Notes: a model not told the origin generated them from the letters alone. 44,364 nt of DNA from Octopus sinensis (GCF_006345805.1 NW_021834918.1:1-44364); one strand, 5' to 3'. Shown: positions 22-41,243, numbered from the stretch's first letter. Made by a program: numbers and translations.

Positions 22-69
22 CCAACTCTTTGTAACCCTTTGTTTTTAGGTAAAACAAGGCATGGTGAA
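22..69 (-). CDS. TNF-like ligand gene A, coding exon 3: (F)HHALFYLKTKGYKEL-G, first strand of the TNF homology domain
   Basis: Minus strand: acceptor ttcttaattttcag, then 48 nt, then donor gtaagt. Phase 1 in and phase 1 out. Paralogous to 33746-33792 including flanking intron sequence. Confidence 0.75.
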
Positions 70-751
70 CTGAAAATTAAGAAGAGAGAAAGCAGACAGT
101 GAGAAGGATATATTTTAATATAGGTTCAATATCAACAGAAGACTATTCAAAGAAAAGGACACCTCCTGATGTATTTCATATATTTAATATTTCAGATTAT
201 CATCTAATAGCTAACTATACGACAGTTTCATAATCATCATTATCTCTTATTATAATCATAAATAAAAATTATCTTCATGGAGAACAATTATTAACCATAA
301 ATGAAAGGGAGCCAAGACTATATAAACGTCTATATATTACACCCATCACTTGTAGTTTCATGAGCTTTAACATGTTCAGTTGTACAGTAGCGATGCCTTG
401 CTCAGACTGATAGGACAATTCTAGCAAACATGAACAGGAGGCTTCATCCTATCAAAGTGTCATCTAAAGCCATGGCCCAGTTAATCATTGTAAACATTTC
501 ATTCATATATTTAATGATGTAGTTATTTTTGCCATTTATTTTTTCAGTATGTCTGGGGTTTTTTCATGTTGAATGAATTGTTGCCTAATTTAAGACTAAT
601 ATATTAAGGACATGTTTAACCCATTCGTTACTGTATGCAGGAGTTAACCCATGTACATAATAGGAGTCACTTAAACAAGTCTATAATGAAAGTATTTTAT
701 TGATACCGTAATAGTAAGAATTAGTGTAAATCTGTAATTGTAGTTATTTAA

Positions 752-1454
752 CCCATTCGTTACTGTATTTATTTTGAGATGCTCTGTGTTTCTTTCAATT
801 ACTTTAAATATAACAAAGAATTTAGTAAAATAACTTAGTTATCATTAAGCTAGTGTTAGGAACATAAGTTGTGACTAAGGTTTGGTGGAAGATTTTAATT
901 CAAAACTTATGAAAACAAGACATTTGTACTACAGAGCTAGAGGCAGTTTCAGTCAGTTTGGTATCGAAAGGGTTAATGATGACGAAGTTTCTTTTACTGA
1001 ATTCTTCATTATTTTAAAAATTAATAGAAATACAGGCAGTGTATTTCAACAAAATGGTTAATAATGACAAAATTACTTAACTAAAATTCTTCAATACTGT
1101 TAGAATTAATTGAAACAAAAGCAGTGCATTTCAACTGAAATATGGTAACAAAAGGGTCAATTAAAACCTTCCAATCAAATTTCATGTTAATTTATGTTAA
1201 TTTATGTTAATTTATGTCCCAAACACTAGCTTAACCCTTTCATAACTGTATTTATTTTGAGATGCTCTGTGTTTCTTTTAATTACTTTAAATATTACAAA
1301 GAACTGAGTAAAATAACTTGGTTATCATTAAGCTAGTGTTAGGAACATAAATTGTGACTAAGGCTTGGTGGAAGATTTTAATTCAGAACTTTTGAAAACA
1401 AGACATTTGTACTCAGAGCCAGAGGCGGTTTCAGCCGGGTTGGTAACGAAAGGG
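752..1454. mobile_element. piggyBac-like non-autonomous composite (MITE-spacer-MITE)
   Basis: TIRs CCC(T/A)TTC(G/A)T(T/A)AC...GTA(A/T)CGAAAGGG flanked by TTAA (748-751, 973-976, 1231-1234; last site ttga). Same composite at 28244-29262. Confidence 0.7.
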
Positions 1455-1544
1455 TTGATGATTTCATTAGTGTTACAATATAATTAGTGTCAGATGATTT
1501 TATAGACATATGGAATGAGAATTTATCAGAATATATGTACTTAC

Positions 1545-1686
1545 AGGATGGAGGAGGTGGTGTCGCAGGCAGTGGTGTCGCAGGTGGTAGTGTTGCAGGC
1601 AGTGTTGAAGTTATAGCCACAAGCAGTGGTGAAGTCGGTGCCACATAGTGTGGAGGAGGTGGTGGAAGTGAAGGAGGATATTTCCT
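1545..1686 (-). CDS. TNF-like ligand gene A, coding exon 2: Pro/Thr-rich stalk RKYPPSLPPPPPHYVAPTSPLLVAITSTLPATLPPATPLPATPPPPS
   Basis: Acceptor tttttttttactttag, 142 nt (phase 0 to phase 1), donor gtaagt. Phases fit exons 1 and 3. Flanks are homologous to those of gene B exon 36203-36233. Confidence 0.75.
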
Positions 1687-1789
1687 CTAAAGTAAAAAAA
1701 AAATAAAGAGAAAAGATGAGGAAAATTAAGATAAGAGGGTGACTGGTGCTATTTGTATTACTTTCATGGGGTAGAAAGGGCTCCTTAGC

Positions 1790-2032
1790 CGTAGTGAAGG
1801 CAATCTATCTAGGGAGATAACCTTACAATAAATCACTGGGTCCGTAGCTTAGAAATACTGGGTTGACGTCCAGCGGGAACAGCTTTGTTTCATGGAGGAG
1901 GAAAGATCTTCTTTAGTACTTGGTTGTACAATGCTTTCCAATGTGTGTAGTAGTGGCGCGCGCACACATTATTAGCCATTTGAAAAGACTATGAAAGTCT
2001 CGACCACGGTCGAACAATGATGATGATGATTA
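1790..2032 (+). mobile_element. Possible short retroposon fragment ending in (GAT)n
   Basis: Relatively GC-rich block ending in aacaatgatgatgatgat, like the RTE-type tail seen elsewhere. 5' boundary uncertain. Confidence 0.3.
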
Positions 2033-2234
2033 CTTTCATCATATTACTGTCTTTTTTAAGGTTTGTCATTGTCCGGTTACAACCCTGATACACTTGTTAT
2101 ACTCTTAGTACTCTTGTCTTATGCTTAATGCACTCTTCTTACACTCATGATAGTGTTTGTTTGTCTCTTGTTACATTTTATCTCTGTCATGTTACTGTGC
2201 TACACACACACACACACACACACATAAATATATA

Positions 2235-2690
2235 CTTTATAATTAGGGTTCAACAAAGATTTGCTTTACCACATACCGAAGTTTAGAAATAGCAGCCAAA
2301 AACCTTAGCTATTTCTTCTACTTTAAAAAGGGACTCCAAGAAAAACCAAAATACTTGAAGTATATTTAAAAACATAGAGAATCCACTTGTATGGATTCTA
2401 TGCACTAGAAAGAACAGCTAAGTTCTATAACCACAAAAAATTGAAGTATTTTGGTTTTTCTGGGAGTCCCTTTTTAAAGTAGAAAAAATAGCTAAGGTTT
2501 TTGGCTGCTATTTCTAAACTTCGGTATGTGGTAAAGCAAATCTTTGCTGAACCCTAATTATAAAGTATTACTTAAGTTTACCGTGAAATGGTCCTTTTTC
2601 ATGTCGAATTCTACATGGTGAAATTATTGATTACTAGTTAATTAATTAATTTTACCCTTTGTTATTATTATATATATATATATATTATAT
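2235..2690 (+). mobile_element. Foldback element with long inverted arms and a ~100-bp one-sided tail (family shared with 7133 and 16201)
   Basis: Arms at about 2235-2365 and 2440-2565 are near-perfect reverse complements (core accacataccgaa..tagaaatagcagccaaa). Tail ends in (TA)n. Confidence 0.7.
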
Positions 2691-3012
2691 ATATATATAA
2701 GAAACCAATTGGTCCAGGAAACTAGATGGCAAATCTTTTTCATTTCCAAATTTATTACTGTCGAATTTTATACCCAATTTTTTGTGGTTATATAACTTAG
2801 CTGTCCTTTCTAGCGCGTAGAATCCATATAAGTGGATTCTCTATGTGTTTAAATATACACTATATCATATGACTAATATATAGTCTTTTTGACTAAAATT
2901 TTTTTACGCGTTAGACCACTGGAAATATAAATTTTGATTGAATGTTTTTAATTTTAATTAAATTCCTTCAAATGACTGAAACAAGTAAAAGAGTAAAAGA
3001 GAGTGTAATATA

Positions 3013-3430
3013 TAGGCGCAGGAGTGGCTGTGTGGTAAGTAGCTTGCAAACCAACCACATGGTTCTGGGTTCAGTCCCACTGCGTGGCATCTTGGGCAAG
3101 TGTCTTCTGCTATAGCCCCGGGCCGACCAATGCCTTGTGAGTGGATTTGGTAGACGGAAACTGAAAGAAGCCCGTCGTATATATGTATATATATATATGT
3201 ATGTGTGTGTGTTTGTGTGTCTGTGTTTGTCCCCCTAGCATTGCTTGACAACCGATGCTGGTGTGTTTACGTCCCCGTCACTTAGCGGTTCGGCAAAAGA
3301 GACCGATAGAATAAGTACTGGGCTTACAAAAAATAAGTCCCGGGGTCGATTTGCTCGACTAAAAAAAAAGGCGGTGCTCCAGCATGGCCGCAGTCAAATG
3401 ACTGAAACAAGTAAAAGAGTAAAAGAGAGT
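3013..3430 (+). mobile_element. tRNA-derived SINE, family 1
   Basis: A-box-like tggctgtgtgg, B-box-like ggttcagtccc, central (TA/TG)n, tail ccagcatggccgcagtcaaatgactgaaacaagtaaaagag. Many copies in the window. Confidence 0.85.
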
Positions 3431-3837
3431 GTAATATGTGTAAAACAACTTGCTCTAAACGAATATGACGAAAAGAAATGCGCTCTCGCCTTTTTATGAC
3501 CGGGTTAAACACTTTAGTTTAACCCATCCATGAGTTCCTACATCATCAAACCATAAAATGTGTTAATAGGAGAAAAAAAATATGGAAAAACATCAATACA
3601 TGAGAGAGTGACAATAATATGAGGAAGATGGTCCCTGGGATGTGCTTTTACAATTCTTTCTCTTTTTTTTTACCAAAAAGGCTTGGTACTACTTAAGAAG
3701 AGTGGACCCCCAACAAGTCTGTGAATTAGCAGACCCGCAGCACTAATCAGTAGACAGACGCAGACACAACGCGCGGTTCAGTGGTTCATTCAGTCCGGGT
3801 TTTTTTTATTAGATAGATATATAAGACAGGGAGACAG

Positions 3838-4100
3838 ACAGATATATATATATGATAGACAGATAGATATATATGATAGACAGATAGATATATAAGATAG
3901 ACAGATAGATATATAAGATAGACAGATAGATATATAAGATAGACAGATAGATATATAAGATAGACAGATAGATATATAAGATAGACAGACAGATAGATAG
4001 ATATATAAGATATATAAGATAGATAGATAGATATATAAGATATATAAGATAGATAGATATATAAGATATATAAGATAGATAGATTATAAGATAGATATAT

Positions 4101-40099: not shown

Positions 40100-40132
40100 C
40101 GCTACATATGTATACAGATGTATGTATGTATG

Positions 40133-40165
<33 letters not shown>

Positions 40166-40190
40166 TATACTATAATATAGAGAGAGGAGA

Positions 40191-40223
<33 letters not shown>

Positions 40224-40259
40224 TGTTTATACATATATATACAAATATATGTATGTATG

Positions 40260-40297
<38 letters not shown>

Positions 40298-40333
40298 CAC
40301 TATACATATAATATCCAGATATATGTATGTATG

Positions 40334-40376
<43 letters not shown>

Positions 40377-40438
40377 AGAGAGAGAGGAGAGAGAGAGAGA
40401 GAGAGACGTATACATATATATATCCAGATATATGTATG

Positions 40439-40474
<36 letters not shown>

Positions 40475-40475
40475 T
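40100..40475. repeat. Compound (TA)n/(GA)n/(TATG)n repeat
   Basis: Visible low-complexity tandem blocks. Confidence 0.92.
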
Positions 40476-41023
40476 AGTGTAAAGACAAACAAAAGAAAGT
40501 GGCAGTCAACGCATTAGTTGGAAGGAAAGACAGAGGGAGACAGACAGAGGGAGACAGACATAAAAGTAGACAGTTGTATGGAAAAACGTGTGAGCAAAAA
40601 AAAATAATGCAATCTGCAGATAAAAGAAAATTAATGAATATGGCGGAAACATGGTTTCTTGACTTTTTGTGTCTTATACAAATAAAAAGGAAAAAGATTT
40701 TACTGAAGGGTAAAAGTGTAACAAAAAAAAAATATTATTAAAGAAAACGAAACATGGAAAACAGCGGAAAACAGGTTTTAAATTATTATTTTAGCGGTGA
40801 TGCAAAGGAACGATGGTGAGAGAGGATCACAAGATGCTTGAAAACTATGAAATGATTTTTCTTTATGAAAAGTTCCCCTCTACTCTTCATTTGTATTTTG
40901 AAAGGCAATCGTGGAAAAATAAACAAAAGAGATACTCTGACTCGTGCGAGAAAGCTAAAGTAAATAAAGTCCGTAGGTTCGCCTAAAGTCCGCTGAAAAT
41001 AAATAAATATTGAAGTCTCTCAC

Positions 41024-41243
41024 CTGGTTTAGACAAATTATTACCACACCACTGCCAATTATGGCCAAAATAATAATTCCGTATTTAAAATAGGAGTTGT
41101 GACGCTTTTGTGCGATAATTCCAGTGAATTTCGTATTTTGTGGTTGAATTCTCTTCCGTTGTCCGCACTGATGTCTTGCAGGTATTCCTCGAACCGCTCT
41201 GGGAAGACACCAGTTGCTCTGCATCTGTAATTGGCTTTGTCAT
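41024..41243 (-). CDS. TNF-like ligand gene B, exon 1: cytoplasmic tail and TM helix (YGIIILAIIGSGVVIICLNQ)
   Basis: Donor CAG|gtgaga at 41024, with downstream intron homologous to gene A. The ATG at 41224 gives 67 in-frame codons; the paralog-aligned ATG at 41243 is out of frame by 1 nt. Confidence 0.65.

Follow-up and report, generated by a model that had tools for sequence, protein, structure and literature searches.

The closest described systems to the locus analysed here are genes of the tumour necrosis factor superfamily (TNFSF) in other octopuses, and according to a 2026 preprint six TNFSF paralogues of Octopus vulgaris form a monophyletic, lineage-specific clade (bioRxiv 10.1101/2024.07.27.603686). 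More distantly, Drosophila Eiger and the Eiger-like TNFs of abalone and oyster are likewise type II ligands, with lineage-specific expansions in molluscs, and vertebrate TNF/lymphotoxin-alpha, RANKL, TL1A, APRIL and CD40L share with the octopus proteins the type II topology and the same jelly-roll fold. Here, we describe two neighbouring paralogous genes, named A and B, on the minus strand of a stretch of 44,364 nucleotides from Octopus sinensis (GCF_006345805.1 NW_021834918.1:1-44364), which is referred to as the window. Their nearest counterparts are found in O. bimaculoides, where the first half of protein P0001 corresponds to gene B with 80% identity and P0014 corresponds to gene A, and in O. 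vulgaris, where P0020 (“TNF family profile domain-containing protein” in UniProt) corresponds to gene A. All of these have the same four-exon layout, and the O. bimaculoides orthologues stand in the tandem order B then A, as in the window. A neighbouring paralogue of the same architecture, represented by LOC106873363 of O. bimaculoides (P0002, “THD domain-containing protein”, Pfam PF00229) and by P0021 of O. vulgaris, lies outside the window and shares 55% identity with gene B over the whole length and 64% within the domain. The window differs from these systems in that gene A has one more 19-residue repeat in its tail than O. vulgaris P0020 as well as a different exon 3, and in that the assembled gene B has a broken frame, unlike its orthologue in O. 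bimaculoides.

In our reading, to which we assign a probability of about 0.9, genes A and B are paralogues that stand in tandem on one strand and belong to a TNFSF clade restricted to Octopus, each encoding a type II membrane protein in four exons, and the single-base deletions in gene B are most likely consensus errors. The gene models were rebuilt from the sequence and have GT-AG introns, with AG before and GT after the exon at all internal boundaries of both genes (Table 1). The initial annotation had described two minus-strand genes made up of an exon with the tail and transmembrane segment, a proline-rich exon, a short exon encoding HHA(L/F)F(Y/H)LK and, in gene B, a domain exon, all with GT-AG ends, and every one of these pieces is present: HHAFFHLK is encoded at 33790-33767 and HHALFYLK at 67-44, both on the minus strand. 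The domain exon of gene B is the only one in the window, no further paralogue was found in the window, and the part of gene A that lies within it is intact. Each protein has one hydrophobic segment, with a Kyte-Doolittle peak, KD(19), of 3.15 at residues 94-112 in A and of 2.37 at residues 48-66 in B. Basic residues precede this anchor, and the N-termini are hydrophilic and without a signal peptide. Both proteins have a type II membrane layout, as had been proposed, with a hydrophilic N-terminus and a single anchor. The tail of gene A contains a 57-bp coding tandem repeat with 2.5 copies in exon 1 (6281-6421, minus strand), which gives rise to a second 19-residue unit, KDEQQALVESPNNTNDNTS, where O. 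vulgaris P0020 has one unit.

The relationship between the two genes extends into the introns. A blastn comparison of window positions 1-7000 with 31000-41600 yielded a collinear, same-strand series of matches: 3-209 with 33727-33933 (86% over 208 bp, E 2e-64), 253-294 with 34280-34321 (86%), 291-571 with 34545-34785 (71%, E 4e-42), 1459-1515 with 36120-36178 (83%) and 1686-1767 with 36233-36308 (73%). The three blocks of homologous intron flanks claimed before were matched in this comparison and two more were added, while the remaining matches between the two gene regions are dispersed repeats. The end of the intron preceding exon 2 of gene B is homologous to its gene A counterpart (blastn). 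At the RNA level, the intronless Logan contig L005 (1277 nt), which encodes P0003 and maps onto exons 2, 3 (48 nt) and 4 of O. bimaculoides, supports the splicing of exon 2 to a 48-nt exon 3 and on to the domain exon in a paralogue. An open frame that runs from the intron into exon 3 of gene B (MPFSLNSLL...SYLSA|HHAFF) was considered as a signal-peptide first exon and rejected, as it has no ATG and a stop closes its gene A counterpart.

Table 1. Exons of genes A and B and the conserved cassette around exon 3 (window coordinates unless another locus is named).
Feature	Position	Strand	Description
Gene B exon 1	41243-41024	minus	Cytoplasmic tail and membrane anchor YFKYGIIILAIIGSGVVIICLNQ; conserved start ATG 41243; donor CAG|GTGAGA
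Gene B exon 1, alternative ATG	41224	minus	In frame with the membrane anchor
Gene B exon 2	36233-36203	minus	Short stalk KDNKQQPPPR + 1 nt; starts in phase 0, ends in phase 1
Gene B exon 3	33792-33746	minus	47-nt micro-exon (S)HHAFFHLKTEGYTEM; codes for the TNF homology domain's beta-strand A
Gene B exon 4	31836-31454	minus	TNF homology domain exon; 126-codon open frame GVTDLHW...HINHHR; TAA 31456-31454
Gene B exon 4, acceptors	31836; 31834	minus	31836 canonical; second AG gives in-frame start 31834
Gene A exon 1	6498-6157	minus	ATG, acidic cytoplasmic tail, membrane anchor FFCIIILVVAVVVVLSIKL; donor CAG|GTAAAA
Gene A exon 2	1686-1545	minus	Proline-rich stalk RKYPPSLPPPPPHYVAPTSP...ATPPPP
Gene A exon 3	69-22	minus	48-nt micro-exon (F)HHALFYLKTKGYKEL + 1 nt; codes for strand A
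Exon-3 cassette, gene B	33686-33902	minus	~110 nt of intron before the exon, the exon, ~60 nt of intron after it
Exon-3 cassette, gene A	1-179	minus	Cut by the window edge
Exon-3 cassette sites compared	L001 3530-3730, 11800-12010, 23950-24160; L002 17960-18180; L003 16470-16700; L004 ~33910-34130		

The assignment to the TNF ligands, which the initial annotation had made, was examined with sequence profiles and with predicted structures. Pfam TNF (PF00229) matches 10 of the 13 family members, with a best E value of 1.1e-6. The family profile, which is the 13-member alignment of the ectodomains (A3), has a sole match in the PDB, zebrafish TNF/lymphotoxin-alpha (7dov_A, E 3.4e-6), and this alignment spans strands A to C as HL-tgGY..L.W...G.kLv...i.IP.DGiY. 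Over the same strands, vertebrate TNF ligands and the octopus proteins share the pattern HL...L.W...G.kLv...i.IP.dGiY.i..qv.l, whereas the C-terminal strand reads S-Y-L-S-I-T-S-L in octopus (by eye) where the vertebrate ligands usually have an aromatic FFG-type motif. AlphaFold models were made for exon 4 of window gene B alone and, in order to show strand A, for the full ectodomain of the paralogue P0002. The mean predicted confidence (pLDDT) is 77.8 for the former and 87.8 for the latter, whose ten strands are those of a complete TNF homology domain (A, A', B', B, C-H). Residues 4-9 of the P0002 model (HAFFQL), which belong to the exon-3 peptide, form strand A, which bears out the AHL-like opening strand expected earlier. 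A Foldseek search of the PDB with both models returned TNFSF ligands throughout the top 50 (TNF, RANKL, TL1A, APRIL, CD40L, TRAIL) with a probability of 1.00, and the template modelling (TM) scores reach 0.69 for gene B exon 4 and 0.75-0.83 for the full P0002 ectodomain. Several relatives are labelled “THD domain-containing” or “TNF family profile domain-containing” in UniProt, one of them with a precomputed PF00229 match. Because the evidence from profiles, fold and orthology agrees, the placement of genes A and B among the TNF superfamily ligands rather than the C1q proteins is supported.

The distribution of relatives is narrow. A search of 5.8 billion proteins returned seven, namely six from Octopus and one from an unlabelled Logan contig, and phmmer, run over all 1.84 billion representatives, gave 15 matches, of which 13 are Octopus proteins. 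The other two, P0015 (5520 aa) and P0017 (1128 aa), were considered as multi-domain relatives and rejected as artefacts, being repeat proteins with weak matches to the individual repeats. At the sensitivity of a single-sequence phmmer search, no relative outside Octopus was found among the 1.84 billion representatives, and no protein identical to the product of gene A or gene B was found in the searched collection. In O. bimaculoides (locus L001), four domain exons are found within 36 kb, belonging to the P0002 gene, the orthologues of B and A, and P0007. The last of these is on the opposite strand to the other three, and B and A keep the order and strand of the window. In a maximum-likelihood tree, window gene B pairs with the O. 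bimaculoides B (100/97), and the two orthologues of gene A pair with each other (99/97). The domain exon of gene B is 81% identical to that of O. bimaculoides B, and exon 1 of the two genes aligns at 89%. Genes A and B are part of a local cluster of the Octopus-restricted TNFSF clade with conserved order, and the cluster had been anticipated in the initial annotation.

For gene A, the O. vulgaris protein P0020 (285 aa) is the orthologue, and the DNA of its gene runs collinear with the window: the first exons are orthologous, and the amino acids of gene A exon 2 are identical to the matching part of P0020. Window positions 1-12000 are collinear, in reversed orientation, with O. vulgaris chromosome OX597837.1 (L003) at 95.5-98% identity, and window position 1 equals L003 16653. 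In O. vulgaris, the start of exon 3 is near L003 16585, and the domain exon follows at 18142-18525, ~1.5 kb past exon 3. Because of this correspondence and the position of exon 4 of P0020, the domain exon of gene A should lie ~1.5-1.9 kb to the left of the window, as the initial annotation had supposed. P0011, encoded on O. sinensis contig L002, was considered as the missing end of gene A and rejected: its exon 3 is identical, the other exons and the introns differ, and it is a paralogue. At the opposite end, window positions 37205-43551 match an unplaced contig of O. sinensis with 99% identity. The comparison also affects an existing gene model, since the O. bimaculoides RefSeq model LOC106872472 (P0001, 315 aa; L001 10001-26261, CM046624.1) is chimeric: it takes exons 1-3 of B and the first 51 codons of the B domain exon and joins them to exons 2-4 of A. 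The O. bimaculoides B domain exon is really open through L001 12784, and P0014 is the proper model of A. The relatives are already in public databases, a point missed before together with the broken frame of gene B, and genes A and B are two members of a known lineage-specific cluster that are apparently unannotated. With them, two members are added to the Octopus-restricted TNF-ligand cluster and the chimeric O. bimaculoides model is corrected, which provides cephalopod immunology with defined ligands that can be matched with TNF receptors; otherwise, this is routine eukaryotic gene annotation.

Several observations weigh against the reading given above. The domain exon of gene B alone reaches 13.8 bits with Pfam TNF (E 0.058), where the gathering threshold is 23 bits, the identity to solved TNF ligands is 12-17%, and the exon junctions of both genes are predicted from consensus sites and homology. 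Furthermore, no annotated orthologue of gene B was found in the protein sets of O. vulgaris or O. sinensis. The O. vulgaris loci L003 and L004 end ~15 kb and ~50 kb short of the gene B copy. For the domain exon of gene B, compared with that of O. bimaculoides, the ratio of nonsynonymous to synonymous substitution rates (dN/dS) amounts to 0.58, a value compatible with rapid evolution as well as with relaxed constraint, and two of the three deletions described in the following, both in exon 1, are also present in the O. sinensis contig L002.

Compared with O. bimaculoides B, gene B has three 1-bp deletions, two of them in exon 1 (GGTT-CGAGG and AGAG-AATTC) and one at the donor of exon 3. The latter is the loss of one G of the donor GGG, which leaves 47 nt where gene A and the six relatives examined have 48 nt. 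Starting from ATG 41243, gene B reads MTKPITDAEQLVSS..., undergoes two frame shifts and meets a stop before the anchor. In the sequence as assembled, this ATG is out of frame with the anchor, and it is ATG 41224 that stands in the anchor frame. The 47-nt exon 3 can be joined in frame to the domain exon only via the second AG (31834) of the CAGAG acceptor, and a stop-free gene B model of 219 codons is obtained only with both ATG 41224 and this second acceptor. The anchor itself reads IGSGVVI in the window (41046-41060), IAVVVVI in L002 (3840-3850) and VAVTVVI in O. bimaculoides; the difference between the window and L002 consists of two compensating 1-bp indels 9 nt apart, which may be errors or heterozygosity.

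How these deletions are to be understood depends on the rate of such lesions elsewhere in the window, for which a long interspersed element (LINE, compared at window 9307-11044) and a satellite (18322-25800) were used. The reverse-transcriptase open reading frame of the LINE is intact over 589 codons in O. vulgaris, and the window differs from it by one substitution and six single-base deletions in 1215 bp. At ~0.5% deletions per base, ~3 would be expected in the 681-bp coding sequence of gene B. Near-identical satellite copies differ by 2-10 substitutions as opposed to 11-15 gap events, and in the comparison with O. vulgaris, which gave 74 mismatches, bases are missing from the window at 29 gap events and are surplus at 15. 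Because the assembly shows this excess of 1-bp deletions, those in gene B are probably sequencing errors, and we consider consensus errors of the assembly a somewhat better than even explanation for them. Any open reading frame in the window may be falsely broken in this way, and single-base deletions in an assembly can give an immune gene the appearance of a pseudogene.

The alternative that survives best is that gene B is a real pseudogene, recently inactivated in the O. sinensis/O. vulgaris lineage by birth-and-death turnover, and that gene A alone is functional. All three frame-breaking deletions distinguish it from O. bimaculoides B and from all paralogues, the two in exon 1 recur in the independent contig L002, the missing annotation and the dN/dS value given above are in line with inactivation, and ATG 41243, which has the better Kozak context (by eye), would open a product of 52 codons without an anchor. 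However, the domain exon runs through 126 codons without a stop or an indel, three deletions in 681 bp equal the apparent single-base deletion rate of the window as seen at the LINE reading frame, and all three lesions are of the error type that is commonest elsewhere in the window. We hold inactivation to be possible at well below even odds. Considerably less probable is that gene B is functional exactly as assembled, using ATG 41224 and acceptor 31834 to produce a type II ligand of 219 aa with a partly novel tail. The uninterrupted frame would indeed contain the anchor, the stalk, strand A and the full domain, but it requires leaky scanning past a better ATG and a non-canonical acceptor where the relatives are all in phase 1 with a 48-nt exon, and its first 27 codons would be read in a non-conserved frame. 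Finally, the idea that the C-terminal part forms a globular head of the C1q type instead of a TNF homology domain can practically be set aside. In its favour, both domains share the jelly-roll superfold, C1q genes are reported to be much expanded in molluscs (PMC6835236), and BclA_C, which has a C1q/TNF-like fold, matches three family members weakly. Against it, Pfam C1q (PF00386) has no match among the 13 members with a cut-off of E<=1, the top 50 structural matches are all TNFSF ligands, the sole PDB profile match is a TNF/lymphotoxin-alpha, and an internal type II anchor with proline-rich stalks free of Gly-X-Y repeats (read by eye) is not the layout of a signal peptide plus collagen stalk.

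The third exon stands apart from the rest of both genes. Together with its flanks (-110 to +60), it forms a cassette that is 77-100% identical among all paralogues examined, compared at the sites listed in Table 1, whereas outside the cassette the introns are mostly unalignable between paralogues and the domains share 40-65% amino-acid identity. Exon 3 of gene A matches that of P0011 (O. sinensis) at 100% identity and that of its own O. vulgaris orthologue at 83%; exon 3 of gene B is, apart from the missing G, 100% identical to that of O. vulgaris P0021 and 90% identical to that of its O. bimaculoides orthologue. Because exon 3 of both genes is closer to paralogues than to the respective orthologues, short-tract gene conversion of the cassette is suggested, perhaps on top of a splicing constraint on the micro-exon. 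A broader scenario, which we put forward tentatively and hold to be possible at less than even odds, is that the cassette is kept by repeated gene conversion between neighbours and/or by a conserved splicing element in the intron, while the cluster as a whole evolves by birth and death, with gene B dying and one exon evolving in concert.

Within our preferred reading of two tandem TNFSF ligands, each exon has its own role. Exon 1 provides the cytoplasmic tail and the signal-anchor, exon 2 a proline-rich stalk of variable length, exon 3 as a 48-nt micro-exon beta-strand A, and exon 4 the rest of the ten-stranded jelly-roll. Genes A and B arose by local duplication, and the near-uniformity of the cassette among paralogues may be partly due to gene conversion. 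By analogy with known ligands, the ectodomain would trimerise, and the trimer would act on cysteine-rich TNF receptors of other cells, whether still anchored in the membrane or released by shedding or cleavage of the stalk, probably in immunity or cell death. It may be speculated that the long proline-rich stalk of gene A and the very short one of gene B lead to differences in reach or shedding.

The surroundings of the two genes are AT-rich and full of microsatellites, copies resembling short interspersed elements (SINE-like), a LINE and a 1.5-kb satellite; Rfam families and tRNAs were not found in the window. The LINE (8812-11934, minus strand) lies between B and A, encodes an endonuclease (Exo_endo_phos_2), a reverse transcriptase and a PHD-finger-like piece, and is found at the orthologous position in O. 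vulgaris. The satellite (14600-25800) consists of six copies with a period of ~1541 bp and fills much of the intergenic space between B and A; between copies one and two, the gap has double the length because of a 600-bp sub-repeat (16535-17953). Intron 1 of gene B contains a 138-bp tandem repeat with eight copies and 91% match (37396-38504), to which units at 8245-8640 and 27523-27790 are related. Microsatellites of great length, of the types (AT)n and (TGTA)n, are located at 12651-14467, 26287-26968 and 31920-32364 and include 1.8 kb of AT dinucleotide. A SINE-like element of ~420 bp occurs in both orientations at 3008-3427, 36340-36759, 25450-25888 and 14451-14761, including the introns of both genes, and many more copies of it are present in the Octopus loci compared.

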